From Dicyema japonicum (taxonomy: Eukaryota > Animalia > Dicyemida), in contig RDEW01000009.1 of the NCBI GenBank assembly GCA_011109175.1, positions 578,875-642,874 of the forward strand: a stretch of DNA of 64,000 nucleotides, read 5' to 3'. Below the pieces are notes generated by a model, which was not told where the DNA came from, did no database searches, and saw only the letters and a program-made list of their open reading frames with translations. Made by a program: the position numbers and the translations under genes. Numbering within the stretch: position 1 is the first letter of the stretch; every line of letters starts with the position of its first letter. Shown piece by piece: positions 2,860 through 55,574 of this stretch.

Positions 2860-3215
2860 TGAATGGCCATACTATTTCCCCTAACAATAGCCAACGAGAT
2901 ACGTTCTCGGAACCAACCAGTCTCTCGCGGATCCTTGGTCACAGCTTGAATCATGGAGCCGATCTTACGAACCAACTCATCTGCTTGGGGGCCAAGGATT
3001 CCTGACGTTTCCACCGCGAATTGAACAAAAAGATACTCCTCCGAAATTTTCTGGTACTTCCTCCTCTTCGTTCCTCGGCCTGCTTTGAACCATGTCCTGG
3101 GTCTGAAGCAGAAGCAACCAAATTAGACGGGGAATAAGTATCAACACACGTCGCGTCCCAAATCAGGTTTCGTCCGTTGGCGAATGGAAAAGTCGTCATC
3201 CCATCAGGGCGTTTT
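2860..3215 (-). mobile_element. CRE-like element 3' fragment (restriction-like endonuclease region)
   Basis: RPDGMTTFPFANGRNLIWDATCVDT...AVETSG...RERISLAIVRGN. Confidence 0.8.
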
Positions 3216-5039: not shown

Positions 5040-5330
5040 CGTGCAACACATCCGCGTTACCAGTAAACACTGTTTATGGTTTCGCTTGTGCCATGTTTTT
5101 CGACTATCCTTTCTGTAGGTCTTCTCCATCCTTTTCTTTGTCGTGCTCGTCTCTTAATTTCGTCCAGATCGTCTGCATTCATCAATCGGCCCCCGATCAT
5201 TGCGTAATCCTCCGCAATGTCCTTGGAAGACAACTTCTTGGAAGTCCTCTGAATGTAGGAGATACAGTATGGGCGAAAAATTTTTCCATGGCGGCATTGC
5301 ATGGTGTCAGTTCATCCATCCGTATAATGT
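5040..5330 (-). mobile_element. RTE-like LINE 3' end fragment
   Basis: FRGLPRSCLPRTL..EDYAMIGGRLMNADDLDEIKRRARQRKGW, similar to C-termini at 24.7-25.0 kb and 58.0 kb. Confidence 0.65.
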
Positions 5331-5339
5331 AGTTAGCGT

Positions 5340-6560
5340 GCGTCATGTGGTTCACCGTTTCTGGTGGTGTCGGATATAGTCCTAAACTATATCTAAAAAG
5401 AACCATTTGCTCCCTACCAACCAGAGGACTTCCCACTGGATGACATTCTCTCAATGTTGGAACATTCTATCGATTGAGATTGTTGACCTCAGGAAACGTG
5501 GAACAAAATCCAGGCCCAAAGAAGTTAACAATCCAGAGCGTAAACATAAACGGGAGAGAGAAGATTGCCGAACTTTCCTTATTCTTGGAGAGGAACAGAA
5601 TAAATATCTGCCTTCTTTAGGAAACGAAGCTTTAAAATAACATTCCTACTCCTCTCTTTAATGGATACAACACCATAAGATCCGACCGTCCATCTGGCCA
5701 AGGAGGGGGTCTACTGACTCTTGTGAGAAAAGGAATAAAATACCTCGAGAACCCTTTTCCCTACAAGAGCCTAATGGAAGACTCGAACACAGAGCTAATT
5801 GGAATTCTTTTGTAACTTCCATTGGAAAAATTGAAATTGCGAATGTTTATGTTCCTCCTCCGGCTTCTGCAAAAAAATTCTATTTTGACCTATCGACCTT
5901 GGACAAACTGGAAAAGTTGTTTTTATGTGGAGTCCTGAATGCGAAGCATTCTTCTTGGTTCCGCTACCAGGCTGCTGATAACAGAGGAAACCTGCTATTA
6001 TCCAAATGAAAAACTTAATAATCATCAACAATCCGAAAAAGAACACTATGACACCATACAACACAAAGGACATGGTGACATCTCCGGACTTATCAATCTG
6101 CTCGCCTCGTCTTTCCGATCATTAATTGGACGGTCCGTTATAATCCGGAGTGACCATCATTCAGTGATAATGAAGCTGAACTGCTAGCCACGTTTTTTCC
6201 GAAGCCTATTCATTTCTATGATTACAACAATGCAATTGGACTGACTTTACAAATTTTGTTGATTCAAAACTGCAAAATTTCCACCTGAAAATTTCTCCTC
6301 CATAGACAGAGCTGTATACTATTTCGACAAAACAATAATTGACGGGAGAAAAATTTTGTCAGAAAAGCATATATAAAAAACGAAAAATTAAAATACGACT
6401 CAAAAACAAAGAAAATAATTATGGAAAAAAAACATCCTTAAGAGAATGACACATCGATCACGACAGGTCATTAATCTAATCAGGGCACTAAACAGTCTGA
6501 TCACGAAAAGCACGAACAACACCCGAAGGAAGAAACTCATGCGAATCTCTGTTGCCATGA
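5340..6560 (+). mobile_element. Vingi/ingi-like LINE 5' part: pseudoknot, 2A-like motif, APE endonuclease
   Basis: Pseudoknot 5340-5406; RLRLLTSGNVEQNPGP runs into KKLTIQSVNING; APE motifs ANVYVPP, CG.LNAKHSSW, SDH. Confidence 0.8.
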
Positions 6561-6589
6561 AAAGATGGCCCGATTATTGAGAGATGCCG

Positions 6590-7470
6590 GGGTTACCTGA
6601 ATATTAGTTAGTGATTAGTTTCTTTGGCTTAAATAATAATATCTTTGATGTTCCCCAAGTACCTGCTTTGTACATGAGGACTGGTCGGACAAATCCATTA
6701 TTTAAGCGTAATCGCATCTTAGTAGGAATTTGATTCTTTCTCATCAGAATGGATAAAATTTTTCGATTACTATTGTGGCCAATATCTTTCGTCTTGTGAT
6801 ATCTTCTGAATCGCCAAGTAACGATTCGAGTGTTCTTCCACTTCTCAACGTGGGTTGGCGTTCTTTCAATAGTGGTTATTTCAGTTTTGTCTTCATTGAT
6901 TTTGTTTTCACTTTTTCCATAATAACGTCTATAAATTCCCGATCTTCCGCGACGAAATCGACATCATCTGCGTAAATGAGTTCTATAAAGTGGTTTTCCA
7001 GACATCCAATTTGTTCTCTTAGATCTCTCAAAGCTGCCTCCAGGTAGATGATAAATAATATAGGAGAGAGTGTCTCCTTGTGGGGTCCCAACATTGATAG
7101 AAAAAGGTCTAGACTCCTTAGAGCCAACTCTGACGAGTAGTTCAGTTTCAGATAATAGCTTATGGATCATGCGCAGACTTTCTTCATCGACAACGTCTTT
7201 CAACACGGTAAGTAGTTTACTCCTGTTGATGCTGTCAAAAGCCTTGCTCATGTCGATTCCCATGATATGAAAGGATCGTTTGTACTTCTGACATATTGCA
7301 GTGATCCAGCGATGGCTCCAGACAACATCAGCCGTAAATCTTCCAGGCCAGAAACCACTCGGACTGCAAAAGAGATATCGATCGACCGACATTGATATAC
7401 GGCCTCGAACAATAGTCGATAGAGTTTTTCTTAGAGTGGTGACTAGCACAATAGGTCTTAATTAATTATT
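6590..7470 (-). mobile_element. RTE-like LINE reverse transcriptase fragment
   Basis: ORFs 6964-7449 and 6876-7127: IDMSKAFDSINR, GTPQGDTLSP, IYADDVDF. Confidence 0.85.
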
Positions 7471-7477
7471 ATTATTA

Positions 7478-8170
7478 CCCCCAGGATCACTGGGTCAAAA
7501 TGAAAGAAATAAAAGTTCTCATCTAACTAAGTGATCCCAGACCGACAAAGGAGAGGACGAGTCCGACGGGGTCGAGAATCCTGAACAACTCTTCTCATTG
7601 GACATGGCATCGGATTAAATTTTCAATATGATTGTAGATATTTCGATAGTGTTTGGAATAGAGGACAGATCAGTAAAATAGCCTCCTTTAAGAGGTTACG
7701 TTGTAATTCGATTAAGAAATTTTCAATGGGCTGGATTTTGAGTTTTGGTCCAATTATCATTATTGCAGTCTCCTCGATTGCGGATAGTTTTAATGAGGAG
7801 AATCATGAAATCTGCATTGCCCACGAAGGAGTTGCATACGTCATCGTTGGTTTGATAAATTGTTCATAAATCGTGGCAAGGCCACCAGTTTGGTCTCTAA
7901 GTGTTTTTGAGAGCACTTTTAAAATTCTCATTTTCTTCAGAGCAGAAGTTACTTTGTTCTCAACATGTCGGATAAAGGTGAGTCCCTGATCAAAGGTTAC
8001 TCCAGAATCTTCGGTGTTTTGTTAATAGAGATAGCTTCGTTCTTCATAAAGACTTTTGGTTCGATACAGAGCTGTCTTTTGTAAGTGGTAAACAGCGTAC
8101 TTTGTTGCTGGTGTGTCGAGTCTCCGCTTCGAGAGCCATAGTGCCAGCTTGTCAAGCATTTGTTGAGCGG
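7478..8170 (-). mobile_element. Vingi-like LINE 3' fragment, same family as 29.5-32.4 kb
   Basis: 7480-7620 is the reverse complement of a close match to 32220-32357; ends in a (TAA)n tail. Confidence 0.8.
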
Positions 8171-8292
8171 ACTTATTAAATGTCATAAAATTGTAATAAA
8201 TTTTATTTATTATAAATAATTAAAATTATATGATAGTCCAATTAATATAGGAAATTTTTAAATTAAATAAGTTTGATCTATTTAAGTCAGTT

Positions 8293-9750
8293 ATGAATAA
8301 GTTAAGCATTGATCAATTAAATTTAGAGAATAAAAGAGTGCTAATCAGGTAACTATAGTCTAACAATTATAGAGTTGACTTTAATGTCCCTATGAAAGGA
8401 AATACTATTACCAACAATCAACGGTATTTAATAATTTTAATTTCAAGTATTGTTGCCGCTCTTCCAACCATTAAATACGCCCTCTCTAAAGCCAAAAGTG
8501 TAGTTCTCATTTCGCATTTGGGGAGACCTGATGGAAAATTTAATCCGAAGTACTCTCTAAGACCAGTTGCGGAGGAACTTAAAAAACTTCTTAAAACGTA
8601 ATTCATTTTCATTCACAACTAGTGACGTCACGTTTATCGAAGATTATGTAGGATCTGTGGCCAAATCGACTTTTGGCGAAAACCCACCACGAGTGATCTT
8701 GCTGGAAAATTTAAGGTTCCATGTGGCAGAGGAAGGTAAGGGTCTCGATGAAGAAGGGAAAAAGGTTACTAAACAACTCAATATCGACAGGTTGTGGGAA
8801 CGAAGGACGAAATAGAAGCTTTTGGAAATATTTTGTCGTCTTTTGGAGACGTTTTTGTAAACGACGCTTTTGGAACTGCTCACAGGGCTCACTGGTTGAT
8901 TCTCTCTTTCCAATTTCTAGTTCAATGGTTAAGATTAAACTTGATCAGAGGGCTTCAGGGTTTTTGCTGAAGAAAGAACTTGAGTACTTTGGAAAAGCTT
9001 TAAAGAACCCTGCGAGACCCTTTTTAGCCATTCTTGGAGGGTGACGATTGTGATAATTGTTAGTGCCAAAGTCTTAGATAAGATTCCAATAATCGAGAAT
9101 CTGCTGGAGGTTGTGGACGAACTGATAATTGGTGGAGGAATGGCTTTCACATTTTTAAAAAAACTAAAACAAATGAAGGTTTACCAAACTGTCATTTCAG
9201 ATTGGGTCGTCATTGTTTGATGAAGTTGGCGCTGAGAAAGTCGTTGGGTTCTGGAAGAAGGCTAAAGAAAAAGGAGTCACAATAACCCTTCCTCTCGACT
9301 TTTATGAGGCTTCTGAATTCTCAGAAAATGCCGATAGAGAAGAAACAACCGTTGATAAAGGAATTAAGGACACGTGGATGGGGCTGGATATTGGTCCCAA
9401 GTCATCTGCTCTCTTTGAAGAAATTATTAAGCGATCAAAGACTATTGTTTGGAATGGGTTGTGATTTTTGTGACTTTGTTAGTCCTCCCGGAGTTTTTGA
9501 ATTTGAAAAATTTTCTAAAGGGACTGAAAAAATGGCTGAGGCAGTTGTGAATGCCACGGAAAATGGGACGGTGTCAATTGTTGGTGGTGGGGACACAGCC
9601 ACTGCAATAACCAAGTTCGGAATGGAAGAAAAAGTCAGTATGGTTAGCACAGGTGGGGGAGCTAGCTTAGAATTGCTTGAAGGTTGGGAATTTATTAATT
9701 TCTAAGGTAAAGTATTGCCCGGAGTTGATTATTTGACTGATGCTAATTAA
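8293..9750 (+). CDS. PGK: Phosphoglycerate kinase, 10 exons, nine introns of 22-26 nt
   Basis: Spliced frame is intact: [78 protein letters not shown]. Introns 8349-72, 8424-47, 8598-622, 8765-90, 8895-920, 9041-63, 9179-200, 9458-82, 9683-706. Confidence 0.98.
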
Positions 9751-9929
9751 TCATTACTAATCTTTAACAGTTCAAATAACATTAACTCATAATTTGTCAG
9801 AAATTTAGCAGGAATTTATTTAGACGTTAATGGGAGTTTTGATTTAAAGTTGGAATTATTATATTTTTCGAGTCGTAATATCTCGTTCTGTTTTTTCAAT
9901 CGAAAAGACCAGTAAGCTAAATGGCTAAT

Positions 9930-10600
9930 TGATCGGAAAGCTGAACTGGCAATCCACCCCTGGAGACGTATATACTTGGAGACGGCGCCACATAACCTTC
10001 GAAAATTTTATGGGGGTGACAGAAGAATCCATTTATGCTGACGACATCGATTTCATAACGAAATATCGATCAGCTCATTTTTGCCTATTGGAAGAGCTCA
10101 CAGTGAATTTAAGAAATGGTGTATGCTTCAAAAACGGAATTAATGGATATCATAAGGATGGAAAAAAGATCGGATTAACCATGGAGGGAGACCACTAAGC
10201 TTTGGCCATTTTACTTGGAGAACTGAGGACATCGTTAGAAGACATGTAAATTTAAGAAGATCTAAATTTGAAAAGAAGTGAATTGACAGAAGACGATCAA
10301 TATATCATCCTTGCTAAGGTTATACAACGCTTTGTTAGACCAATCCTACTGTATAATTTATCAACGTGGGTAATGTCCAAGGCTGAAGAACATGGGATAG
10401 ACTCGTTTCATCTAAAACAGCACAGGACATTGCTTGGATTGAATTGACCAAAGAAAATAGACAGAATGCTTTAACGATTTTTGCTTCACTGGTCCTTCTC
10501 GAGGTCAATGATTTGAGATGAAAGCTCTTCGGACATATATTGAGATAGGAAATGGATACCCCCGCTATTACTTCGTTGAGAGTGGATCACGTTTTTGTGG
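9930..10600 (+). mobile_element. Decayed RTE-like RT fragment
   Basis: SIYADDIDFI motif and downstream thumb-like remnants. Confidence 0.6.
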
Positions 10601-10799
10601 ATGATAATTTCTTAAAAGATTTGTATTTCCAGATTTTTTCAAGTTAAAAATTTCGGTCTTTGATAATAATTTTAGCGATAATAAAACTTTTACCTTAAGC
10701 ATTAAATGTAAGGAGTTGTTGGACAGTCAATTAAATAATAAAAAATAAGACATCACTTATCTCCAGAGACATAATATATAGCTTCGCACAGGCAGGACA

Positions 10800-11030
10800 C
10801 AATTTATTAGAGTAAATAATATAATTCAATGTCACAGAAACATAGAAGACTTTCACATAAGTCCATCCAAATCCAGCATAAAAAGTGGAAGACGTCCATT
10901 CTTTGCAGCTGTGACAACCCTTTAGTAGAGGGAGACTCAATGATCCTTTTTTGTGCTACCCTGGCACTGGGAGCCATCTGAGACAGGTGGATCATATGAC
11001 GCCACTATTTTAGAAACGTTGGGACCATGC
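10800..11030 (-). mobile_element. Diverged copy of the short Vingi-derived element
   Basis: Similar to 11823-12108 and 26813-27123 (cccagtgccagg..gcac.aaaaaggatcatt); pseudoknot 10940-11003. Confidence 0.75.
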
Positions 11031-11499
11031 GTCTACAGACCTTAATTACGATTTTTATTACATATCCATTTTATTGTGAGAATATACAAAGTTAGATTGC
11101 GTCTTGGACTTTCAACCTTTCACCTTTTAATGAAAATAAACTCAACTCCTTTAACCTGTCAAGCGTCAGCGACGAAGTATGCCGTTTCTAAGAAATTTAT
11201 CGAAGAATCCGAAGTGGCTTTGTGTGTTGTGCCATGCTTTAGAAATGTCAGGATAATTTAATAAGGGATAATTAATTTTTTAATGGCCAACTACCTCATT
11301 AATTCAATAAAGACCCTTACATTTTTAGAGCTGAAATCTCCGACCATGCCATATCAGAGGACTCTTTTTTGCATCCAAACTGATCGTCTTCAGAAAGAAT
11401 ATCTCTGATTTCGGAAGGATTAGTTCATCTAGAATTTGACATCGAACGAAGGAATGATGCCAGTCTATATGAAGCCTGTTTCTTTTTTCATTTTTTTTA

Positions 11500-11810: not shown

Positions 11811-11822
11811 AATTTGGCTGTT

Positions 11823-12108
11823 TATTTATTAACTCCGGATACACCGACAGAGAAGTTAAAGTAAACAACTAATTAAGTATATCCAGTTTCCACTTCTACA
11901 GAAACGTCCATTACATGCAGTTGTGGAAACCCCTCCAGTGGAGTGGGGGAGAGCAAATGATCCTTTTTCGTGCCGGCCTGGCACTGGGAGTCACCTAGAC
12001 AGGTGAATCACATGACCCCACTCTAATAGGAAGAGACAGGAGGAACATACAAGAAAGCAGAAAACTTCAACCAATTAACCACGCAACACCACATGGCGTT
12101 ACGCGGCT
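11823..12108 (-). mobile_element. Short non-autonomous Vingi-derived retroelement (286 bp) with 12-bp TSD
   Basis: aatttggctgtt at 11811-11822 and 12109-12120; 5' hairpin, pseudoknot and Vingi-type 3' end. Confidence 0.85.
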
Positions 12109-12129
12109 AATTTGGCTGTTAGGGAATTG

Positions 12130-14669: not shown

Positions 14670-17050
14670 CGTCATGTGGTTCGCCGTTTCTGGTGACGAA
14701 AACTGTGGAATATACTTCACAGACAAAAGAACCATCCGATACCTCCAATCCAAGAGGAATGTCTTTCTTGGACGGTCTCCCCACTGGCCTCTCTCTCCTA
14801 CCTTGATGGAAGCCCACCTAATGCTTTCTGGCGATGTGAACCCCCACCTCGAAAACCCATTATTTTGATTCAACTAAACATAAATGGAGTGAAAGGGAAG
14901 ATCCTCGAACTCAGAAACCTCTTAAAAGGGTATAATACTGACATTTGCCTACTCCAAGAAACAAGACTGACTCCTCTTCTTCCACTCCCGTCTTCCCAAA
15001 CTATCACGTTATCAGGCGCGATCGCCCAGCTGGGCGGAGTGGTGGACTGCTTACCCTTATCAAAAAAGAAATTCCGTACGCAAACGAAACTTTTGTCAAC
15101 ATCAAGTCTCCCGTCGAATATATTGGTATTCTAGTCAAGACAAGCATCGGAAACATAAACATATTGATTGTGTATGTGCCACCGCCCAACTCATGCCTCA
15201 AGGAATTCAGGTTCTCCCTGTCAGACATCGACAAATCAAAAAATATAGAAGGCCACTGACCTCAAAAAGACGTCTTCCCCCAGAGCCGATCCACTCATAA
15301 AAGAAAGAAATTACCTAAAAGCCTCCAAAAACAATCCTGGGAAACAAGATTGAGAATTCGTACATTAGAAAGAGAGATCAGGAACAATGCAAAGAAAAAA
15401 CAAGAGAAAGTTTGGAAAAACCTCATGTCCAATCTAAACAAGCAGAACTCCCTTACAAAAATGTGGAAAACACTTAGAAGCTTTAGTAACGCTGACAACC
15501 CGGCCACACGTGATGAAATAGAAAACAAGATCTTCCTAAACAAACTTATGAAGTACTACTCCTCCACGAGTTTCATCCCACACAAAAATTCGAAGGTCCA
15601 TCCATCCTAGCCCTCAAACCTAAAAGAGCTACTCCCCGATTGTCCTCTCTGTGGAGAACATACAGGATATGGTCAAGGGTCAAAAGTCGACTTATTCTTG
15701 TGGTCCGGACGGAATCCCTGCAATAGTTCTGAGAAACATAGGCTTCTATGCTATCATATCTTTCACAAAATTTTCAACTTTTCAATCAACGAAAATTGTT
15801 CTTCCTTCCATATGGAAGCTATCAAACATAAGACCAATTCTGAAACCCGGGACCAAAGGGATCACCATCCTCATACAGACCAATCTCTCTCCTATGTGTT
15901 ACGTCAAAACTTTTGGAAAAGCTGATTCTTGAACCAATCAAATCATACCTTCCTGATGCACTTTTTCAACACGGATTCAGAAAAGGACACTCCACGGAAA
16001 CGCATCTTACATGCCCTACAAATTTAATCAAGGATAGGCTAAAGCGCAAACCTAATCAGAAGTCTTTGTTATGCTCTATCGATATGAAAAAGTTTTCGAC
16101 ATTTTCCCAAGAAAGCTTTTGACAAGTAAGATCTTTACGTCAAAAATTCTAAACAACCTAAAAATCTGGATCGCAAATTTCCTAAATAGAAGAAGAATAA
16201 CTGCTGGAAAAACTAGATCAGTGACCAAGTTCCTTTCAAATGGGGTCCCTCAAGGATCTCCACTTTCACCACATCTATTCAACTATTCTTAAATGAGATG
16301 CCCTCCCTACCAGTGACGATACTCTGGTTCTGACATATGCGATGATATAATCATCCCAGTCAAAGACCAGTGCGTTAATACTGCTGTTTACCGGATGCAA
16401 GCTTCATTGGACGATCTGAACTGTTGACTCGTTAAGAACATTCTACATACAAATCCCGAAAAGTCTTAGACAACAATTTTTATAACAAACAGAAGATTTA
16501 CAAACTCCGCTCCATGTGTAACCATAAATGAAAACTCAATCCCCACGACCAACTCGGTCAAGATACTGGGCGTAACTTACGACCCACACTTGACCTTTAG
16601 CAAACACGTCGACAACGTCATCTCTTCGGCACAACGAATGCTAAATTTTATTAAAACACTCCTTGGACAATATAATAAGTGTTTCAACTCAAATTTGGAC
16701 TCGCTCTACGTGCAGTATATTCAACCGTCTCTAACTTATGGGTGTGCGCATGGGGAACCAACCTATCAAACATGAATATAGAAAAAATCAATACCTTCCA
16801 AAAAATGGCCAGTAAGGCTTTGCAAAGGTTTTCTTGGACACCTCTAAACCCTACACCTTTTGAGGGAACTAGTGAGGAAAACTGGAGCCTTACTACCCTT
16901 CAAAAAAGTTAGAAACCCCCGCCCAATCCGGTAATGCGTTGGAACCCAGGAAGAACACCGAGCAAGAATGAGATGGCTACTCGAGGCGGCCAGAATCACC
17001 TGACGGCTATGTAGTTATTTAATTTGTCGGTGATTTTTGGTTTTTAATAA
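14670..17050 (+). mobile_element. Vingi-like LINE, near full length, decayed
   Basis: Pseudoknot 14670-14735; degenerate 2A LMLSGDVNPH; IQLNINGVKGKILEL; RT motifs GVPQGSPLSP and (Y)ADD-like; terminal stem with (TAA)n. Confidence 0.88.
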
Positions 17051-18657: not shown

Positions 18658-20732
18658 TTACTTTTTTAAAGTAATACTAATAATCTTAATTTCTTCTAAT
18701 GGTTTTTCTGTCTTCTCTGTAACCTTAGCATGTGATATATTCTGAACAACTTCCATTCCCTTGAAGACCCGTCCAAAAATAGTATGTTTGTTATCCAACC
18801 ACGGCTAAAATCATCTACCGACAAATACAGTAGGGACTGTTGTGATGAAAAACTGCGACCCATTTGTGTTGGGTCCACGATTGGCCATACTCACAGTAAA
18901 CGGTTTATCGTGGTTCAACGAAGGGTCGAACTCGTCCTCAAAGTTTCCTCCCCAAATGGACTCTCCCCAGTCCCTAGTCCATCTGGGTCTCCCGTCTGAA
19001 TCATGAAGCTCCTGATGACTCTATGAAACAAATGCCCATTGAAGTATGAATTCCTGGCGTGCACACAGAAGTTCTCAACAGCCTTAGGGGACCTGTTACC
19101 AGTAACACCAATAATACTCTTTCCCAAATAGTTTGATGTGAATATCCCCGTATGAGGTGTGCAGAATAGCCGAGGTTGAAATAAGGAAGGGCTCGAATTC
19201 CTGAGAATTCTCAGTGAGCTCGTCCTTTGTTGGTTTCTCGTTGAAGATATCTCGGTCCAATTCTCCGCTGAAAATAATAGAAAAACTAACTTTTCAGAGT
19301 CGGGTGGTTCATTCCGTGTGAACAGAAAAATCCGATTCTTCCTAAAGGCTGTGCAGAACAAAGTCGGGTCCGCCCGAACGTTGACGTAAAAGCTCCGGTT
19401 AACCACCATTTCCGCAGTGACGACGCTACTGATCCTATTCCCTCGTGGAATTCCTTGAAACAAAGCCAAATGGACAAATCTGCAATTCTCGTTCTTCCCA
19501 AAAATCGTGGAAACAGTGTTGCTGACAAGATTGACCACTACCATTACCAAAATTACTACCTTTAATGCCCAACATTGTTGCATATATAAGGAAGAACCCA
19601 CTGTCATCGTAAACTAGACATTATCTCACGAAATAAAACTAATATTGTAATATTTGTAGTAAATTGACTTTTCTAGGTCCTTTCTATGGCCATTCTCCTC
19701 CCAAACTCCATGTTGGGGATCACAGATTTTCGTTGCTGCAAATCTACCACCAAACTCAAAGATTCGTCGATTAGTTTGATTAATTTTCCCGTTAAGAAAT
19801 TGAAAATCCTAATCTTTCTGTCAGAACACATTGTGGCCATTTGGTCTCCACTGGGTGAAAAGGTCAAGTCCAATGGATAGCATTTAAGCTGTCATTAAAC
19901 ATCAAAAAACCTCCAACATGCAATATAAATCAGTAGAAATTTTCTCTGTTGCCGAGAACCCGACAATTCCTGTGGGAAAGCGGAATTCTGTCGTTTGATT
20001 AGTCCAGTACTCGATGAGCCCCTGTGCATCGCAGGACACAACCACATCATACACTCCATTGAACTGGAATTGATAAATAAGATACTTTAATGATATTAAC
20101 CGGGCAAAAATGTCGGTTTGAAATGACCGCCAAAACTGGTCTGGTGTTATCACGTGCTTCAAAAATGTGTATGTTGTTGGAATTCTTTTCAGAGACTGCT
20201 ATAATCAATTCTGGGTCGTTTTTTGAATAAATCCAACCACAAGAGAGTGGTTCAAAACTGAGTCTCTTCATAGTGATCATGTCTAAAGTCAGAAAACAAA
20301 GAAACCGAAGTTGACCACCTCAAAAATTTTCATGGTCTTGTCATTAGAGACCGTGGCTACCATCTTCCCATCAAAACTGACAGCTGTATGTTCCACGTTG
20401 CCAATGTGGCATCTGAAATGTTTGACAAATTCAATCCCATCGAGTGTTTTTTTCCAAAATTTAAGATGGCCGTCGTCGCTTACTGTAATTAGAAAATCAT
20501 CTCTGAAAGTAAATTTAAAAAATACGCTGCTGTGGCAACAAATGTGATGGTTCCTCTGTGCATGTAACTCTTCTCGTAAGAAGTAGCTGAGGGGAGACTA
20601 TCTAGGTAGTATTTTTCATTGTCAAGTTCTGAATAACTATGGACTTATACTTTTTTGTCTTTTGGGCTTTGGAATTGACGGTCCCACAAATTCACTAATT
20701 TCTTGCTGATCGCCTTGTATCTCGGATGACAT
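18658..20732 (-). CDS. PPWD1: Peptidylprolyl isomerase domain and WD repeat-containing protein 1, multi-exon
   Basis: [20 protein letters not shown] repeats, [62 protein letters not shown]-stop; tiny introns. Confidence 0.92.
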
Positions 20733-26760: not shown

Positions 26761-26812
26761 TTATTAAATAAAAGTAACATTTTTGCTTATCTTATGAATT
26801 ACTTGACCCTGG

Positions 26813-27123
26813 AGTAACAAAAAATAGCCGCGTGGCGCCATGTGATGCTTCGTGGCTAATTGATTGAAGTTTCTGTTTTGTTTTTCTGTTCCTCTCTCTT
26901 CCTATTAGAGTGGCGCCCAGTGCCAGGCCGGCACGAAAAAGGATCATTTTCTCTCCCCCACTCCACTGGAGGGGTTTTCCACAACTGCAACTATGGACGT
27001 CTTACCCTTTATGCTGACTTCGGATGGACTCTTTCTGTAGAAGTGGAAACTGGATACATTTAATTAGTTGTTTACTATAACTTCTTTCTCGGTGTATCCG
27101 GGGTTAATAAATTAAATTAATTA
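26813..27123 (+). mobile_element. Short non-autonomous Vingi-derived retroelement (311 bp) with 16-bp TSD
   Basis: aattacttgaccctgg at 26797-26812 and 27124-27139; homologous to 11823-12108 but lacks about 26 nt of the pseudoknot. Confidence 0.88.
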
Positions 27124-27199
27124 AATTACTTGACCCTGGCGGTAACATTTGCACGGGCTGTAGGTAAAGATGTCAAACAGTTCAAAGATATAAAAATGT

Positions 27200-29504: not shown

Positions 29505-32357
29505 GGTTCATTATGAAATTATTTTTTATTGCATTAATTTCATGCGGCTCGCCGACGACGAGGTGGCATTTGGAAAAAAAGAACCACACTTTCCCCTATC
29601 TTCACGGGTGGACCAATAAGGAAGGCCTGGCCGCTGCGGAGACGTTGAGGCAAACCCTGGACCAGCCAGATTAGTCCAACTCAACATAAATGGAATCAAG
29701 AACAAGATACTCGAACTTCGGACATTTGTGAAAGAAAATCACATTGATCTGTTGCTAATTCAAGAGTCTAAGCTTTCTCCAAAGAATTCAACACCAGTAT
29801 TTCCGGGATTCACAGTAATTCGCCGTGACAGAATTGGCAAACTTGGTGGGGGTCTTCTCACAGTTATCCGCAACGGCATTCCGTTTGAGGACTTAGCTAA
29901 CAGTGCTTACACTATGCTTAAAGGATATGGAAATCTCGAACTTTTGGTTACCAAAGTACGATTCCCAAGGCTATCAATAATAATTGTCAACGCAAGTCTC
30001 CCATTGTTGAGTTCCTACTCGTCCAGTGCTCCCAGACTCACTCCTCTCGCATCACTGAAGGATGTGATTATCTGTGGTGACTTCAATGCGAAGCACCCAC
30101 TGTGGCTGACAGGACAAACCTACGACAAAAGAGGGAAGATGATAATTGAGGACCTCCACAGCCTATGTATACTCAACGATCCTGCATCTCATACAAGAAC
30201 ACCTACTCGACGTAACGATAAACCTTCTATCAACATCTCATTGTCTAACACCGTCCTTGGCCCCTCTTATTGACTGGTCAGTGAAGTATGACACCAGGAG
30301 TGACCACAATCTAATATTTTTGGAGGTCAAAACAAGGTCACGGATAAAAGGACAATGCCCAACGATAACTAACTACATCCTTGCTAATTGGAAAGGATTC
30401 AAGGAATACGTCGATAATTGTATTGGACTATTAAATTTCCCCACTCCTTCCTCCGTCGAACAATTAGTGAATGGTTCAACTCCACCATAAACGCTGCGAA
30501 AAAGAAGTACATTCCTATGGGGAGACAACCTACGTCATCAAAACGTTTCAGCACAACGACGAAACATCTGATCAGAGAACGAAATAATCTAAAGATGGTA
30601 AAATCGCCAACAGAAGAGAACATCAGAAAAATACGAGAATTGAACAGAGAGATCGACAACAACATAAAGGCAGAAAATGTAAATAGATGGACGAGACTAT
30701 CGAAACTATCTCAAAAACCCTTCAATGCAGAGAGTGTGGAAGTGTGGAAGAACATCAAAAGATCCTCCCCAGAAGAAAAGTCGAAGTCTACATAAAACCA
30801 GACACTCTGATAAAATATTACACGTCTATATCCTACAAGAAGTTTTAAAAGAACACCAAGTATTCCTGTAAAAGATTGAACCGAAACGCTCCGATGACTG
30901 GATCCTATTTACTAGTCAGGATATTCGCAGAGCCATATCTAAGCCAACAACTCAGAGGCCAAAGGACCAGACAACATAACCAAATGTGAACTGAAGCACC
31001 TAGGACATCGAGCCCTGGGACTATTAGTCTATATCTTCAACCTATCCATTAACACAAATACAATCCCTGAAATACGGAAGAAGTCTCTAATCAAACCTAT
31101 TCGAAAACCCAACAAACCAATAGATGAACCATCTTCCTATCGCCCATTATCTATTCTAAGTCCGGTTTCAAGGATCCTTGAAAGGCTTGTCTTGGAAAAA
31201 TACAAGACTCAATTACCTCCGACCCAGCACAAATTCCGGGATAACCATTCGACAACAACACACCTTACAACCCTCACACAATTCTTTGCGGAAGGATTTA
31301 ACTCCTCCAAACCTCATTAGAGGACAGTACTTATATCCGTGGACATCACAAAAGCCTTTGACTCAGTCCCTAGGAAACTCCTAACAAATAAAATATTTGA
31401 AACCAACATCCATCAGAACCTGAAACTTTGGCTTGGAAACTTCCTAAATGAAGACGAGCACAAATACTCTGCAACAACATCAAATCAAGATCTCGCTATT
31501 TCCTAAATGGAGTCTCTCAAGGCTCCCCACTATCACCCCAACTCTTCATCTCTACATAAACGACATGCCACAAACCTGTAATGAAAGCTGTCTAATCCTC
31601 TCTATGCCGACGATATCACTCTTGCTTCCAAGGACAGAAACATTCAATCAGCGACTCAGTCCGCTCAACAAATGCTTGACAAGCTGGAACTATAGCTCTC
31701 GAAGCGGAGACTCGACACATCAGCAACAAAGTCCTCTGTCACTGTTTACCACTACAAAAGACAGCTCTGTATCGAACCAAAATCTTTATGAAAAACGAAG
31801 CTATTCTATTAACAAAACACCGAAGATTCTGGAGTAACCTTTGATCAGGGACTCACTTTATCCGACATGTTGAAAAACAAAATAACTTCTGCTCTGAAGA
31901 AAATGAGAATTTTAAAAGTGCTTTCAAAAACACTTAGAGACCAAACTGGTGGCCTTGCCACGATTTATGAACAATTTATCCAACCAACGATGACGTATGC
32001 AACTCCTTCATGGACAATGCAGATTTCACGATCCTCCTCATTGAAACTATCCGCAATCGAGGAAACTGCAATAAGGTTAATTGGACCAGAACACAAAATC
32101 CAGCCATTGAAAATTTCTTAATCGAATTACAACGGAATCTCCTAAAGGAGGCTATTTTACCGAGCTGCCCTCTATTCCAAACACTATCGAAATATCTACA
32201 ATCATACAGAAATTTTGAGCCGATGCCATGTCCAATGAGAAGAGCTGTTCAGGATTTTCGACCCCGCCGGACTCGTTCTTTCCTTTGTCGGTCTGGGATC
32301 ACTTAGATGAGAACTTTTATTTCTTTCTCTTTGACCCAGTGATCATGGAGGTAATAA
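29505..32357 (+). mobile_element. Vingi-like LINE, full-length insertion with 12-bp TSD, decayed ORF
   Basis: tatcatgaagga at 29493-29504 and 32358-32369; CGDVEANPGP in frame with LVQLNINGIKNKILEL; CGDFNAKHPLW; YRPLSILS; DITKAFDSVPR; YADD; 3' stem and TAATAA. Confidence 0.92.
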
Positions 32358-34192: not shown

Positions 34193-34806
34193 AATCGTGG
34201 AAGTTATTGAGCCGTGAACAAAGGAATGTTGTTATTTATATATATTTTATTAGGCATATTCGAGAATGTCATTTTTCTATAATTATGTCCCTGTCAATAT
34301 TGACTATGATCTTTATTAATAACTTGCATTAATAAACTGTGTTTACGATTATTTTACGTTGTTGATATTATTAATATCCAATATCAACGCTTTTTTGATT
34401 TCTCCTTCGATTAGTTGTGAGTTCAATTCCCACACCGCTGCCTACTTGGTCGAAGGATCTATTTCTGTTCTTTTCTTTATTCGATTCCTAATAGGTGTCA
34501 TGGGATTTGCATAACTCGGGAGGTTCCCATTGATGGTCGATATCCATAAGGGATCTTCCTCTTCTCTTACTCCAGCTGGAAGGGTTCACATAAATGGTTG
34601 ATATGGATTGATTTTTGGAAAGGATTCGTCTCACTCCGACCGTGGGAACTGGATATATATCTCAATAAGACGTTAATTAAATTTAACCTTTTCTCAGTGC
34701 ATCGGGGTTATTAAATAAATAATATTTTAAAATTGAGACCAGTCTGCCTTGCGATTAGATGATCGGAAGCCTAACTCAGGTCCACTATGAAATAACACTT
34801 AATGGC

Positions 34807-37781: not shown

Positions 37782-37943
37782 TTAATAAATCGGAAAGGTA
37801 AAAAATGACCCTTAACCATTGAGCCAATTGGCTAATAATAAGCCATCATTATAATATACAAACAAAAATTAAAAATTAAATTATCAATTAGCCATTAATT
37901 ATTTTTGAATGTGATAATTATATCGTTTTTGATGATTACTAAT

Positions 37944-38001
37944 AATGCCACGTGGCTCACCGATGTGGTTGCATTGCACAATTTATGTGAAAAAGAGCCG
38001 C
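37944..38001 (+). ncRNA. Solo Vingi-type 5' pseudoknot
   Basis: P1 aatgc/gcatt, P2 gtggctc/gagccgc, P3 acc/ggt, P4 caca/tgtg, A5 linker. Confidence 0.65.
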
Positions 38002-38387
38002 AAAATCCCTATCCCTTTTTCATTGAGACGTGGATGGTGTTGTGCATTTTTGATGATTAGTGCATAGATACCCTGCAAGCGTAGTCATGGAAGACTACTT
38101 TGGTTTGGATTTTCCAGGTTTTCATGTTCGATCAAGACAATCTTATTGGCCGCCCTGGATGAATACCTTAAAGAAACTGGAAAACGCCTCAAAGATGGGA
38201 AGGACCTTGACAGGCTACGAGACATAGCACTGAACTGTAAAAAGTGGAAGAGGTAGAATGAAAATTTTCATATATTCAGATAATGGAAGGGAAACCGAGT
38301 TGAAGGTAAATAGTTTTCTAAAATTGGTCAGAAAAAATATTTGATTTTTAAGGCTTTCAAGACTTTAACTCTGCTGCTGTCCATTCG

Positions 38388-40685: not shown

Positions 40686-43055
40686 TATATGGCTCCCATG
40701 CGGCGTGGTGGCATTTGAAAGAAAAGAGTTACACTTTTTTATCCTTCTGAGATGGACAAGGAAGGTCTATGCCGATGTGGAGATGTCTAACCAAACCCTT
40801 TAGAATAGTTCAACTGAATTCAAATGGAATCAAGAGTCAAATACTTGAACTTTGGACTTATGTGGAGAAATACCACATCGACATATTACTACTTCAAGAG
40901 TCCAAAGTTTCCGGCAGCAATGCAACTCCAAGATTCCCAGGATTCATGGTCATTTGTCGCGACAGCCGTGGGTAACTTGATGGAAGTCTTCTTATTGTCA
41001 TTTGTAACGGAATTCCATACGAGGTTATCACTGACTGTCTATTTTATGCTCCATGACTGTGGAAATCTCGAACTTGTGGCAACCAAAATCAGATTCCTCA
41101 GACTTTCTCTAACATTAGTAAACGCATATCTCCCGTCTTTAATTTCCTGCCCCTCCAGTGCTCCCAGATTACCTCACTGAAGGATGCAATTATCTGTGGT
41201 GACCTCAATGCGAAGCATCCATTATGACTAACAGGACAAGCCTATGACAAAAGGGGGAAGATGTTAATTGAGGACCTTCACAGTCTCTTCATTCTCAACA
41301 ATCCACATTTCCATACAAGAACACCTACTCGACGAAATAATAAACCCTCTTCCATCGACATCTCACAGTCATCTCCATCCCCGGTCCCTTTTATTAACTG
41401 GTCCGTAAAATATGACACCAGGAGCGACCACAATCCAATATTTTAAAAGTCAAAACGAGAAGACGGATGAAAGGACAGTGTCGAAGATAATTAATTACAT
41501 CCTTGGGAACTGGAGAGATTCAAAGACTATGTCAAAAACGCAGTTGGTCTTTTTCAGTTTCACTACAACCTCAGTTGAAAAATGGTTAGATGGTTCAAAT
41601 TATTCTCCCCAGGTAAGGAAGTTATTCATCCAGATGGGCCGACGTTTTTCCTCATCAAGAAGATATGATACTCGGAAAAAAGCTCCTGATCAAAGAACGA
41701 AACATTTTGAAGAAGAACCATTTCAAAAATGAAGACATTGTCAGAATACATTCGCTAAACAGAGAAATAGACAAACAAATCAAGGACACGAGCACAAAAA
41801 GGCGGACGAAGATATCACGAGATCTCTCTGTAAACCCTTATGTTATACGGGTCTGGAATACGATCAAATCAATCAAAAACTCCACTGCACAACATCAAAA
41901 ATCCATGTTAATCCCAACACTCTAATTAACTATTATACTTCAGTCTCGCACAAAGATTTCTTCTTTTTACTTGAAGAGGATAAGACCAGAAACCTCCACA
42001 GACTGGATCTTAGTCTCCGGAGCGAATGTTTGTCGGATAATATTCAGAAAGCGGAAATTAGGAGCCAGATTCCATCTCCACTATGCAGCTGGGGGGGATC
42101 TGGGTCCTCTGGCGCTGGAAATGCTAGCTCCAATATTCAATACGTCGATAAATACAAACTGTAGCCAGGAAGTTTGGAAGAGGTCTCACATAATACCAGT
42201 TCGTAAAGCAGGCAAACCCGTAGACCGACATCAATCCTATCCGCGTTTTCAAGAATTCTCGAAAGGATGGTCCTCGATTGTATTCATTACAATGTCTGCC
42301 TTTCAACATGGGTTCAGAGCAAACCATTCAACTTCGACTCATTTGACGACCTTATCCAAATTTATTTCTGAAGGATTCAAAACGCCGAAGCAAAATTTAA
42401 GGACTGTTCTTGTTTTTCTGGACATTGCCAAAGCATTTAATTCAGTCTCAAAAGTCCCTAACGAAAAGGACATTTGAGACGGATATCCACCCTAACCTGA
42501 AATGGCTCTAACTATAGGCGTGGGCAGGTAATCTGCAACAATGTGAAATCGAAGACACGCTTTCTCTCAAATGGGGTTCCCCTGTTACTGTCATCAACAC
42601 TATTCAACTTATATACACGATATAGCCGGGTGGCATAGTGGTTAGATGTCGGGCTTAAGTGGCTTAGGCTACGGGTTCGAATCTCGCTGCTGTTCGTTCA
42701 CCTGGTGGAAGGTTCCACGCATCTACGATGCAGAAAGGGTTTGACGAGTGACGCCGTCATCAGTGGATACTCACTGCGGAACTGGATGTCTAGAAAGGAC
42801 ACTCACACAAGAAAAAGAAAAAAAAGAAGTGAAGATCATTCCTTGGTTCTACGATTAGTTAAAATTAACTGTTCTTTACTTAAATAAAGTGTGTGTCCTG
42901 CCTATGCGGAGCTATAAATACTATGGCTCTCGTGAAAAGGCTATTATTATTATTTATTATACACGACATGCTGCAGCCAATAGGCGATAACTGTCTCCTA
43001 CTACCGCAGGCAGACAACATTGTCATTGGTGGAAGGGACAGGTACTATGAGAAAC
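40686..43055 (+). mobile_element. Vingi-like LINE (decayed) interrupted by a SINE
   Basis: Decayed pseudoknot, CGDV*PNP, VQLNSNGIKSQILEL, LDIAKAFNSV; the RT frame LFNLYIHD|MLQP..QADNIV continues across the SINE. Confidence 0.85.
42621..42957 (+). mobile_element. tRNA-derived SINE, full length, 9-bp TSD
   Basis: A box tggcatagtggtt, B box ggttcgaatc; tatacacga at 42612-20 and 42958-66. Confidence 0.9.
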
Positions 43056-53657: not shown

Positions 53658-55574
53658 AGGGACCAGTCTGAAATGGTGATTTAAATGTCATTTATATTTC
53701 ATTTTGTTAGAGTCAGCTCATCTTCCAACTCAGGAAACACGTGGTTTTATCTTATGCCGTAAAATGAATTTTTGATTTCTTCTAACTCCAGAATCAATCT
53801 CATATTATCTCAGGAATTGGTCTGGTAGAAAAGGATCGTTTTTGACACATTTTATGATTATCATTAAAAACATTCTGGAATTAATAATCTAACTAATAAT
53901 TCCTTCTATTCTCTCGTGGCAAAGTTGTCAAAATTTATCCATGTTTCGATACAAACGAGATTCGAACACAGAGCATAGTGTATCAGACTCTTTCTCATTC
54001 TGAAACTTTGTACATCCACTATTTACTGAATCCATCATTTCATTCATTCATGTGAGAAAAAGTGAAGCGAGAAGTCACATCCATCTTGAAGGGATAAATA
54101 AATTGTGTTCACTAAAACTAAGTCATCGATTCAACTATTCGACCAACTAATCATTTAAACTTATAGGTCAGGACCTGTCTTTTCTTGTGAAAGTTTAATA
54201 TGTAATAATGGTCTCTACTTGTTGGTTGAGTGGTTGGTGGTCTCTCTAATAATGTCTTTATCATACTCTCAGTCTGTCCATCCTACCCCTTTTATAACTA
54301 CAATTTTCGACGTCAGAGGACAGTGGACGACCTGGAAGGAAGATAGTTACATGGGGAAAACTGGTAGAGCGGATAGTGAAGAACACTGCACAAGCGGAAC
54401 CCTAAGTATTCATATGCTTACGGGTCAGATGAATTTACTGTATTTTTTCAACCCCAAATTCAATCTTTATCGGCGATCTGAATTCAAAGAACATTAATTT
54501 AAGCTACTAACGCATTAATCATGATGGGCCCCTATTCTTTTAACTTAAGTTTAACATCTGAAGAGTTAAACCACTTTTTCTTATATAGCGGCCACAAACA
54601 TGGTGTTTTCTATGTATCCTCTCCCTTTTTGCCGCATACGAAACATCCAATCATTCTTTTGAATATTTATTGAACATAAATCGTAATAAAAGTATTAATA
54701 AAAGACCCCCCTGTTTAAGTTAGAATAAAATCTTCCTAAAATCTTGAAACAAGTTGAGTGCTAAATGCGGGCTTCTTTTCAAAGGGCTGATCATGCGAAG
54801 GTCAAAATTGTTTTAATAGTACTCACTTGTAACTTTCCTCTTCGCACGTATCCGTAGTTCATCAAGGTTGTCCGCTGTTTTCATTTTTCCATCAACTTTT
54901 TTATAATCTTGATCCAGAAAAGTAAAGAAACAGTTATCTGTCGTCCACGAAAGCTTCCAGTTTCATTTATTAAAAATTTTTCATTCTTCACTGGAAAAGG
55001 TCAACGTAGAAAAATGTAAGCATTTTTTCTACGAGCAATATCTTCAGGATCTTTAGAATTGGCCGAACTTTTTGTGAACCTCCACTTTTTATCAACACGC
55101 GCTTTATATAAATGAATCTTTATATAAAAAGTAGATCTAACCATGCATCTTCTACGTGTGCGCTTCGTGGGGCCCAATCATCTTTGTTAGGGGTCGAGGG
55201 ACCAAGGTTGGTGCGTTGGGTCTCGTTGGAATTACTTAATTTAATTTATTAACTCAAGAACCACAAGAAAGAGGAAAAGAGTTATCTTGTAAATTAAATG
55301 ATCCCATTGTTCACAGCAGGCTTTCTCCGCAGTTAGTTTGGAGTCCTATATTAATCCCCACAAAGGGAAGGTTTTTTTTCGTACCTTGTGCGAGATATAT
55401 TGTAAGGATGCCGCGTGACTTACATACATGGTGGTATTTCTCACTTGAAGTGATGCAAAAGAGTCGCAAACTCCTTTCCCGCAATCATGACGGCGTGGAT
55501 GGTGGCTGGATCACTTAGTTCTGGTTTTAACGATAATCCTGGTTTATTAATGATAATAATTATAATTTCGCAAG

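Follow-up and report, generated by a model that had tools for sequence, protein, structure and literature searches.

A double pseudoknot with hepatitis delta ribozyme architecture in octopus LINEs and SINEs

The stretch of DNA analysed here (64,000 nucleotides; hereafter the window) contains an RNA motif of approximately 65 bases with the architecture of the hepatitis delta virus (HDV) ribozyme, a double pseudoknot, and this motif is present in both LINEs and SINEs. The first-pass annotation described it as a new RNA motif with a non-canonical core. The locus raises the question of whether the motif is a self-cleaving ribozyme, a new class of RNA, or a variant of a known fold that serves another purpose. 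The window is rich in repeats, with a G+C content of 34–46% in 2-kb bins, and the best protein matches of one reverse-transcriptase ORF in it are from Octopus sinensis. These matches, together with an intact Octopus sinensis counterpart of the ORF that opens inside the motif, point to an octopus as the source of the window. On the minus strand, the ORF at 18915–19607 encodes part of a cyclophilin (Pro_isomerase) domain and is probably a host-gene exon or retrocopy.

Copies of the motif and covariation of their helices

Each copy was written segment by segment (P1-J1/2-P2-P3-L3-P3'-P1'-J1/4-P4-L4-P4'-J4/2-P2'), such that the joined segments reproduce the letters of the window exactly. Exact parses of eight octopus copies show the nested double pseudoknot order P1, P2, P3-L3-P3', P1', P4, J4/2, P2', with no spacer between P2 and P3 or between P3' and P1'. 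The helices and the HDV helix order noted in the first-pass annotation are all present, and the parses of the five copies named c1 to c5 match the window exactly. In the LINE copy c1 (5340–5406, plus strand), P1 (5340–5344) pairs with 5366–5370; J1/2 (5345–5346) is followed by P2 (5347–5353, paired with 5400–5406); P3 (5354–5356 with 5363–5365) encloses the L3 loop GUUUCU (5357–5362); and P4 (5373–5379 with 5387–5393) is followed by J4/2 (5394–5399), with the candidate catalytic C at 5393.

The other copies differ in context and in preservation. The second LINE copy, c2 (14670–14735, plus strand), has P1 cgtc/gacg, P2 gtggttc/gaaccat, P4 ctgtgga/ttcacag and J4/2 aCaaaa. Copy c3 (37943–38001, plus strand) lies inside a 108-nt mini-element, and c9 (55406–55467, plus strand), which was recovered in a descriptor scan and belongs to the c3 family, has P2 gtgactt/gagtcgc, J4/2 tgCaaaa and one broken P3 pair. 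Two copies are on the minus strand: c4 (12019–11957) is a full motif internal to a SINE-like element, and c5 (11003–10940) is an older SINE copy with P2 atgatcc/ggatcat and one mismatch each in P1 and P3. A further SINE copy, c8 (in the element at 26813–27124, plus strand), has a core deleted for the P2 5' strand, P3 and L3 and was recovered by the covariance model. The copies at 29536–29587 (c6, in a LINE) and 40686–40732 (c7), both on the plus strand, had been called decayed; they are indeed relatives of one family and have no P4. A weak covariance-model match at 34488–34561 resembles a decayed SINE relative. Outside the window, an intact copy (L001) was found in Octopus sinensis at 2996–3062 of its locus; the covariance model identified no other copy in 88 kb of Octopus sinensis loci, and a scan of metagenome contigs with the octopus-type pattern gave 0 matches. 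Since c1, c2 and c3 have little or no sequence in common beyond the first ~26 nt of the motif, they represent separate families.

The covariation proposed in the first-pass annotation is borne out. In alignment A4, P2 is paired in all seven sequences (100% of cells), and three of its seven pairs have changed on both sides: G-C to A-U in three sequences, U-A to C-G in two, and U-A to C-G in one. The sequences of P1 and P4 differ among families with pairing kept, and one P4 pair differs between c1 and L001 (U-A to C-G). Overall, 90.2% of the structure is paired in A4, compared to 34–55% when the 3' partners are slid by 1–3 columns, and none of 500 shuffles matches the observed pairing or covariation score. 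Strands also pair better with their own partners than with those swapped from other copies (P1, 0.98 against 0.65; P2, 1.00 against 0.83; P4, 0.98 against 0.34). P1 alone is short: its probability against random upstream sequence ranges from 0.008 to 0.63 copy by copy, and Fisher combination of these values gives approximately 0.002 for the three octopus families and approximately 5e-6 with the relatives described below added. The G-U pairs in the c1 P1 are G-C pairs that have undergone CpG decay. Compensatory changes thus maintain the octopus helices, pointing to selection mainly on the structure.

A simpler account would be that the resemblance arose by chance, or that it results from coding constraint on the leader peptide described below: loose descriptors match often in AT-rich DNA, and the motif overlaps an ORF. 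This explanation is extremely improbable. The shuffled and slid controls fail to reproduce the pairing, and the same fold is found in independent lineages of other organisms. Moreover, the peptide encoded across P4 differs between c1 and c2 although the P4 hairpin is kept, and the fold is also kept in non-coding SINEs; together, these two observations indicate that the constraint acts on the RNA.

Position of the motif in LINEs and SINEs

Logan contigs of the source sample (one DNA-type sample) were aligned to 5200–11100; the limits that such contigs give are those of repeats rather than of transcripts. The alignment shows that the c1 family has a high copy number. Among the best-supported loose ends are those of 58 contigs that lose similarity just before 5332/5333: 31 have unrelated AT-rich flanks, and 27 have a conserved upstream sequence in common. 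This loss of similarity indicates that the c1 family begins TTAGCG..., 6–7 nt before P1, with a 5' leader TTAGCGT at 5333–5339 (plus strand). L001 has the same TTAG.G(T)G leader, and so does the sequence that precedes the SINE core; the SINE core includes the LINE leader, as TTAGAGTG, ahead of P1. The upstream consensus of the 27 contigs ends ...GGCTCCAGGGAGCTTGAATT and could be a longer 5' variant or the product of head-to-tail arrays. In the same contigs, 7367–8154 is a very high-copy repeat with a summed depth approximately 5–8x that of the c1 LINE region (5200–6775), and its depth exceeds that of neighbouring stretches by a far larger factor.

The other elements place the motif at varying distances from their 5' ends. 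The mini-element that contains c3 is 108 nt in length (37939–38046, plus strand) and is bounded by perfect 13-nt target site duplications (TSDs; 37926–37938 and 38047–38059), and its P1 starts 4 nt inside this boundary. This mini-element comprises the motif and ~45 nt in common with c9, and has no A/T-rich 3' tail. Copy c2 begins at or near P1. The SINE-like element of c4 (11822–12108, minus strand) has 11-nt TSDs at 12119–12109 and 11821–11811, the SINE of c8 (26813–27124, plus strand) has 15-nt TSDs at 26798–26812 and 27125–27139, and in both the motif is ~90 nt from the element 5' end. The description of the motif as lying at 5' ends therefore needs to be narrowed: it is close to the 5' end in LINEs, but 4–7 upstream nucleotides are kept in these, and in SINEs it lies ~90 nt inside. 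In the c1 family, c3 and the SINEs of c4 and c8, the expected cleavage site neither coincides with the retrotransposed 5' end nor lies upstream of it.

The LINE motif overlaps the start of an ORF. J1/2 together with the first P2 base spells an ATG at 5345 (5345–5347). In the frame of this ATG lie a 2A-like peptide, GNVEQNPGP (5492–5518, plus strand), and, downstream, an apurinic endonuclease (APE) domain. The c1 reading frame contains a stop at 5441–5443 that is private to this copy; in most contigs of the family, position 5441 is C and position 5443 is G. An intact homologue, P0001 (LOC115229065 of Octopus sinensis GCA_006345805.1), begins at the J1/2 ATG of L001 with the sequence MWFTFSGGAGYSPKRYLKRTI..., its N-terminus reading MWFTFSGG.... 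The LINE of c6 encodes a 2A-like GDVEANPGP at 29638–29664 (plus strand) followed by an APE ORF at 29728–30273, and a degenerate 2A-like peptide, GDVNPHLENP, is found at approximately 14826–14870 in the c2 LINE region. In the LINE copies, these 2A-like StopGo peptides sit between a leader of ~50 amino acids and the APE domain. No RNase H domain was identified in P0001, which is an APE fragment, or in four full- or near-full-length relatives from other organisms; these proteins were found to have APE and/or reverse transcriptase (RT) domains. The link to Ingi/Vingi-like LINEs made in the first-pass annotation is judged right.

In both SINEs, the head of the element (12108–12075, minus strand; 26826–26859, plus strand) repeats ~25 nt of the motif region: the leader, the P1 5' strand, J1/2 and the start of P2. 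A tRNA-derived SINE head was considered and rejected, as ARAGORN returned no match and the head instead duplicates the motif's 5' half. The partial head copy suggests that the first ~25 nt have a separate role at the extreme 5' end, such as promotion of transcription or definition of the 5' end. The J1/2-P2 junction forms an E-box-like hexamer (CATGTG or CACGTG, as at 5344–5349 and 37949–37954) in most copies; this may be a coincidence of the AUG and P2.

Such a role could be taken further, with the DNA rather than the RNA as the functional entity: the motif would work as Pr77 does in L1Tc, as a Pol II promoter inside the element or as a sequence that defines its 5' end, made up of an initiator at TTAG and downstream elements including the E-box-like hexamer, with the RNA fold secondary. 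The repetition of only the first ~25 nt at the SINE extremity and the uniform element 5' ends at TTAG/AGC are consistent with this, and Pr77 itself combines promoter and ribozyme functions (PMC3383444, PMC4748587). However, a DNA-level role leaves unexplained both the compensatory changes in P2 and the retention of P1 and P4 helices of wholly different sequence, and we consider it improbable as the main function. A promoter role of the first ~25 bp may instead add to, rather than replace, a function of the RNA.

The catalytic core and its canonical relatives

When the c6 APE domain was used as a HMMER query, many proteins with an N-terminal 2A site were recovered, and five of their loci were examined. 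In four of the five, a well-formed HDV-like ribozyme lies directly at the called ORF start. The L3 and J4/2 sequences are UGUUCGC and CAAA in L003 (1299–1372), UGCACGU and CAAAU in both L008 (1491–1556) and L010 (351–416), and UCUACGC and CCAAAU in L009 (1538–1616). A scan of metagenome contigs with the canonical L3 pattern gave 121 matches, of which only L025 (minus strand) folds, the other 120 being chance matches; L025 has the same core with different P1, P2 and P4 sequences, and ...LSGDIEPNPGP is encoded downstream. The five ribozymes come from ENA, Logan and JGI contigs. These canonical relatives have a P1 of 6–8 bp, a P3 of the form RCC/GGY and an L3 of 7 nt whose first base is U and whose sixth is G (fitting U-N-N-N-C-G-Y); in three of them, the 2-nt J1/4 is complementary to L3 positions 2–3. 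By analogy with HDV, the C that follows P4 should act as the catalytic residue, cutting 5' of P1. A c6-family relative, L002, was also tried as an HDV-type knot and was rejected, as it does not fold in this manner. Many of the related leaders (P0017, P0026, P0041, P0067, P0088, P0092, P0101 and L025) carry the peptide (T/P)VF(S/W)xS(R/C)P approximately 20 amino acids upstream of 2A; this peptide is absent from the octopus leader.

The octopus copies resemble these five relatives in helix order, in a P3 of RCC/GGY abutting both P2 and P1', in a J4/2 made up of a C followed by As, and in position at the start of an ORF with a leader and 2A; unlike them, they have neither the 7-nt U-N-N-N-C-G-Y L3 nor the 2-nt J1/4 matched to L3 positions 2–3 nor, as a set, a P1 of 6–8 bp. 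The comparison changes the reading of J4/2. It had been claimed that the octopus copies contain no conserved catalytic C in this segment, but a C is found 0–1 nt ahead of the A-run in seven of eight copies, in the contexts C-U-A5 (c1 and L001), C-G-A5 (c4 and c8), C-A6 (c5), A-C-A4 (c2) and G-C-A4 (c9); it is absent from c3, c6 and c7. In c1, c4 and c5 this C could alternatively close P4, which is how it was originally read, and the C in c2 (aCaaaa) and c9 (gCaaaa) was overlooked. Nor is the A-run the oddity that it was taken to be: an A-rich J4/2 is ordinary for the HDV-like class, as CAAA(U) in the canonical relatives illustrates, and the octopus C and A-run correspond to this segment.

The non-canonical character of L3, by comparison, was correctly recognized. 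The octopus loops read UUUUCU, GUUUCU, UGUCUA, UGUCUCA, GAUGU and UACAU, and the L3 U..G signature (a loop that opens with U and has a G close to its 3' end) is absent from all eight copies, which span at least three families. In HDV ribozymes these residues form a trans Watson-Crick pair (U20/G25 genomic, U23/G28 antigenomic) that is perfectly conserved in nature, is counted among the six invariant nucleotides used in searches for HDV-like ribozymes and is sensitive to mutation, although certain single mutants are still active at a reduced level (PMC3386971). P1.1 is less clear-cut: two L3-J1/4 pairs can be drawn by hand in seven of eight copies, but at varying L3 positions, and by our estimate this would occur by chance approximately half of the time. 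In the trypanosomatid L1Tc ribozyme (L1TcRz), a P1.1 of one pair is compatible with activity (PMC3185411).

P1 is also short. As drawn, c3, c4 and c9 each have a P1 of 6 bp, and c5 has one of 6 positions, of which one is mismatched; the helix comprises 5 bp in c1 and in L001, and 4 bp in c2. A mismatch occupies the first pair of c1, L001 and c2 (in a 6-nt register for the c1 family). In known ribozymes, a P1 of ~7 nt directly after P3' sets the cleavage site, and mismatches in this helix accompany loss of activity (PMC3774820). Inspection by eye for a longer P1 that takes in the 5' leader identified none, except for a bulged 7-bp version in the c1 family.

Searches of the window and L001 against Rfam 15 gave no HDV-family match at the gathering threshold or at E<=10, in keeping with the first-pass expectation of novelty. 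The canonical relatives are equally undetected by Rfam, so this blank says little about the octopus motif. The motif is not a new class of RNA: it is a diverged variant of the HDV fold, and comparison of the sequences suggests that it descends from canonical HDV-like ribozymes situated at the same place in related LINEs.

Cleavage, known systems and a possible role

Whether the variant still cuts can be judged from the core and from the ends of the elements. An active ribozyme with a remodelled active-site loop would cut 5' of P1, freeing LINE and SINE RNAs from read-through transcripts or from their own short leader; the RNA left would have a 5'-OH end, and its fold would promote translation from the J1/2 AUG, as reported for other LINE HDV-like ribozymes (PMC6765202). 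The complete HDV topology with its covariation, the C and A-run that match CAAA(U) of the canonical relatives, the start of c2 at P1, and a position and organisation like those of L1Tc/ingi (PMC3185411, PMC4035085) are all consistent with this reading. It is nonetheless doubtful, though clearly worth considering, since the L3 pair is missing from every octopus copy (PMC3386971), P1 is 4–6 bp rather than the usual ~7, with the cleavage-site pair mismatched in the c1 family (PMC3774820), and most full-length copies keep 4–7 nt before P1 (~90 nt in SINEs).

The loss of the L3 pair, the short P1 with its mismatched first pair in the c1 family and the retained upstream nucleotides are three independent signs that the RNAs copied into DNA were not cut at P1. 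As judged from these features, the octopus motif probably cuts poorly or not at all. That cleavage has been weakened or lost while selection for another role has kept the compact fold is, in our estimation, the likeliest of the readings, at about even odds. The C before the A-run and the possible 1–2 bp P1.1 retained in octopus copies argue against it, as does the start of c2 at or near P1, which fits a cleaved template. Most copies in the window are also old and decayed, and active master elements may have a better core. A bolder view, put forward tentatively and rather unlikely, is that evolution has re-purposed the HDV fold. The RNA would cleave by means of a new active-site loop in which the U..G metal site is missing, or it would have given up cleavage and would serve as a 5' module that sets the start codon in J1/2 and brings in ribosomes or the LINE protein.

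The closest known system is that of L1Tc/ingi with its short, bipartite partners NARTc and RIME. The first 77 nt of L1Tc/ingi are an active ribozyme (PMC3185411, PMC4035085), and the octopus LINEs resemble these trypanosomatid elements (L1TcRz/Pr77 of L1Tc, ingi, NARTc and RIME) in that a LINE with one ORF carries an HDV-like fold within its initial ~77 nt. As in L1Tc, the ORF opens with a 2A peptide and the fold is common to short non-autonomous partners (PMC3185411, PMC4035085, PMC3708506). L1TcRz has a P1.1 reduced to 1–2 bp (PMC3185411, PMC4035085, PMC3708506). However, L1TcRz cleaves at element position +1 and keeps the L3 U..G pair (PMC3386971), whereas the octopus motif is without the pair and lies 4–7 nt inside the element. 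The absence of RNase H from the scanned proteins of the octopus-related LINE group is a further difference from the L1Tc system.

The HDV-like ribozymes of R2, R1, R4, RTE and LOA/Baggins elements also place a nested double pseudoknot at the 5' end of a LINE; these are ribozymes which process co-transcripts and for which an IRES-like role has been proposed (PMC3774820, PMC6765202, PMC5786205). Their P1 of ~7 bp sets the cut, either at the end of the element or upstream of it, and their P1.1/P3/L3 nucleotides are conserved; relative to these ribozymes, the octopus motif, known here from its sequence, has a shorter P1 and a different L3. Kojima (2018) reported SINE bodies derived from the 5' ends of Vingi and RTE elements, including a SINE that contains the first ~74 nt of a Vingi element, with no structure named (PMC5786205). 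The octopus SINEs similarly reuse a LINE 5'-terminal segment as their middle 'core', but the earlier case is one of sequence similarity only, the same paper does not name Vingi among the ribozyme-bearing clades (PMC5786205), and the octopus LINEs are at most candidate members of Vingi. A full-text literature search identified no paper that joins octopus and HDV-like ribozymes.

We propose that the motif is a 5'-terminal RNA module of a clade of octopus single-ORF LINEs that encode a leader peptide, a 2A StopGo site, an APE endonuclease and an RT, and that their short non-autonomous derivatives carry the same module. The element RNA would start at UUAG... and then fold into the double pseudoknot; the first AUG would be in J1/2, ~12 nt from the RNA 5' end, and the ORF would be read through the fold. 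Under this model, the structure would be a compact 5' module for cap-independent use of the start codon and/or for recognition by the LINE machinery, the latter of which would account for its retention in non-coding SINEs.

Two groups of elements are new here: a group of LINEs with a 2A leader and without RNase H that has canonical ribozymes in several organisms, and a very abundant octopus branch of it, where covariation maintains the fold although a signature catalytic element is missing. With these elements it becomes possible to test which share of the HDV core cleavage can do without, and whether the fold also serves translation or RNP assembly through its structure alone, which could explain why SINEs use LINE 5' ends as their cores. 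If the octopus motif is a non-cleaving 5' module, it would be a natural case of the exaptation of a ribozyme as an IRES or packaging signal, and would provide a structural explanation for SINE 'core' domains derived from LINE 5' ends.
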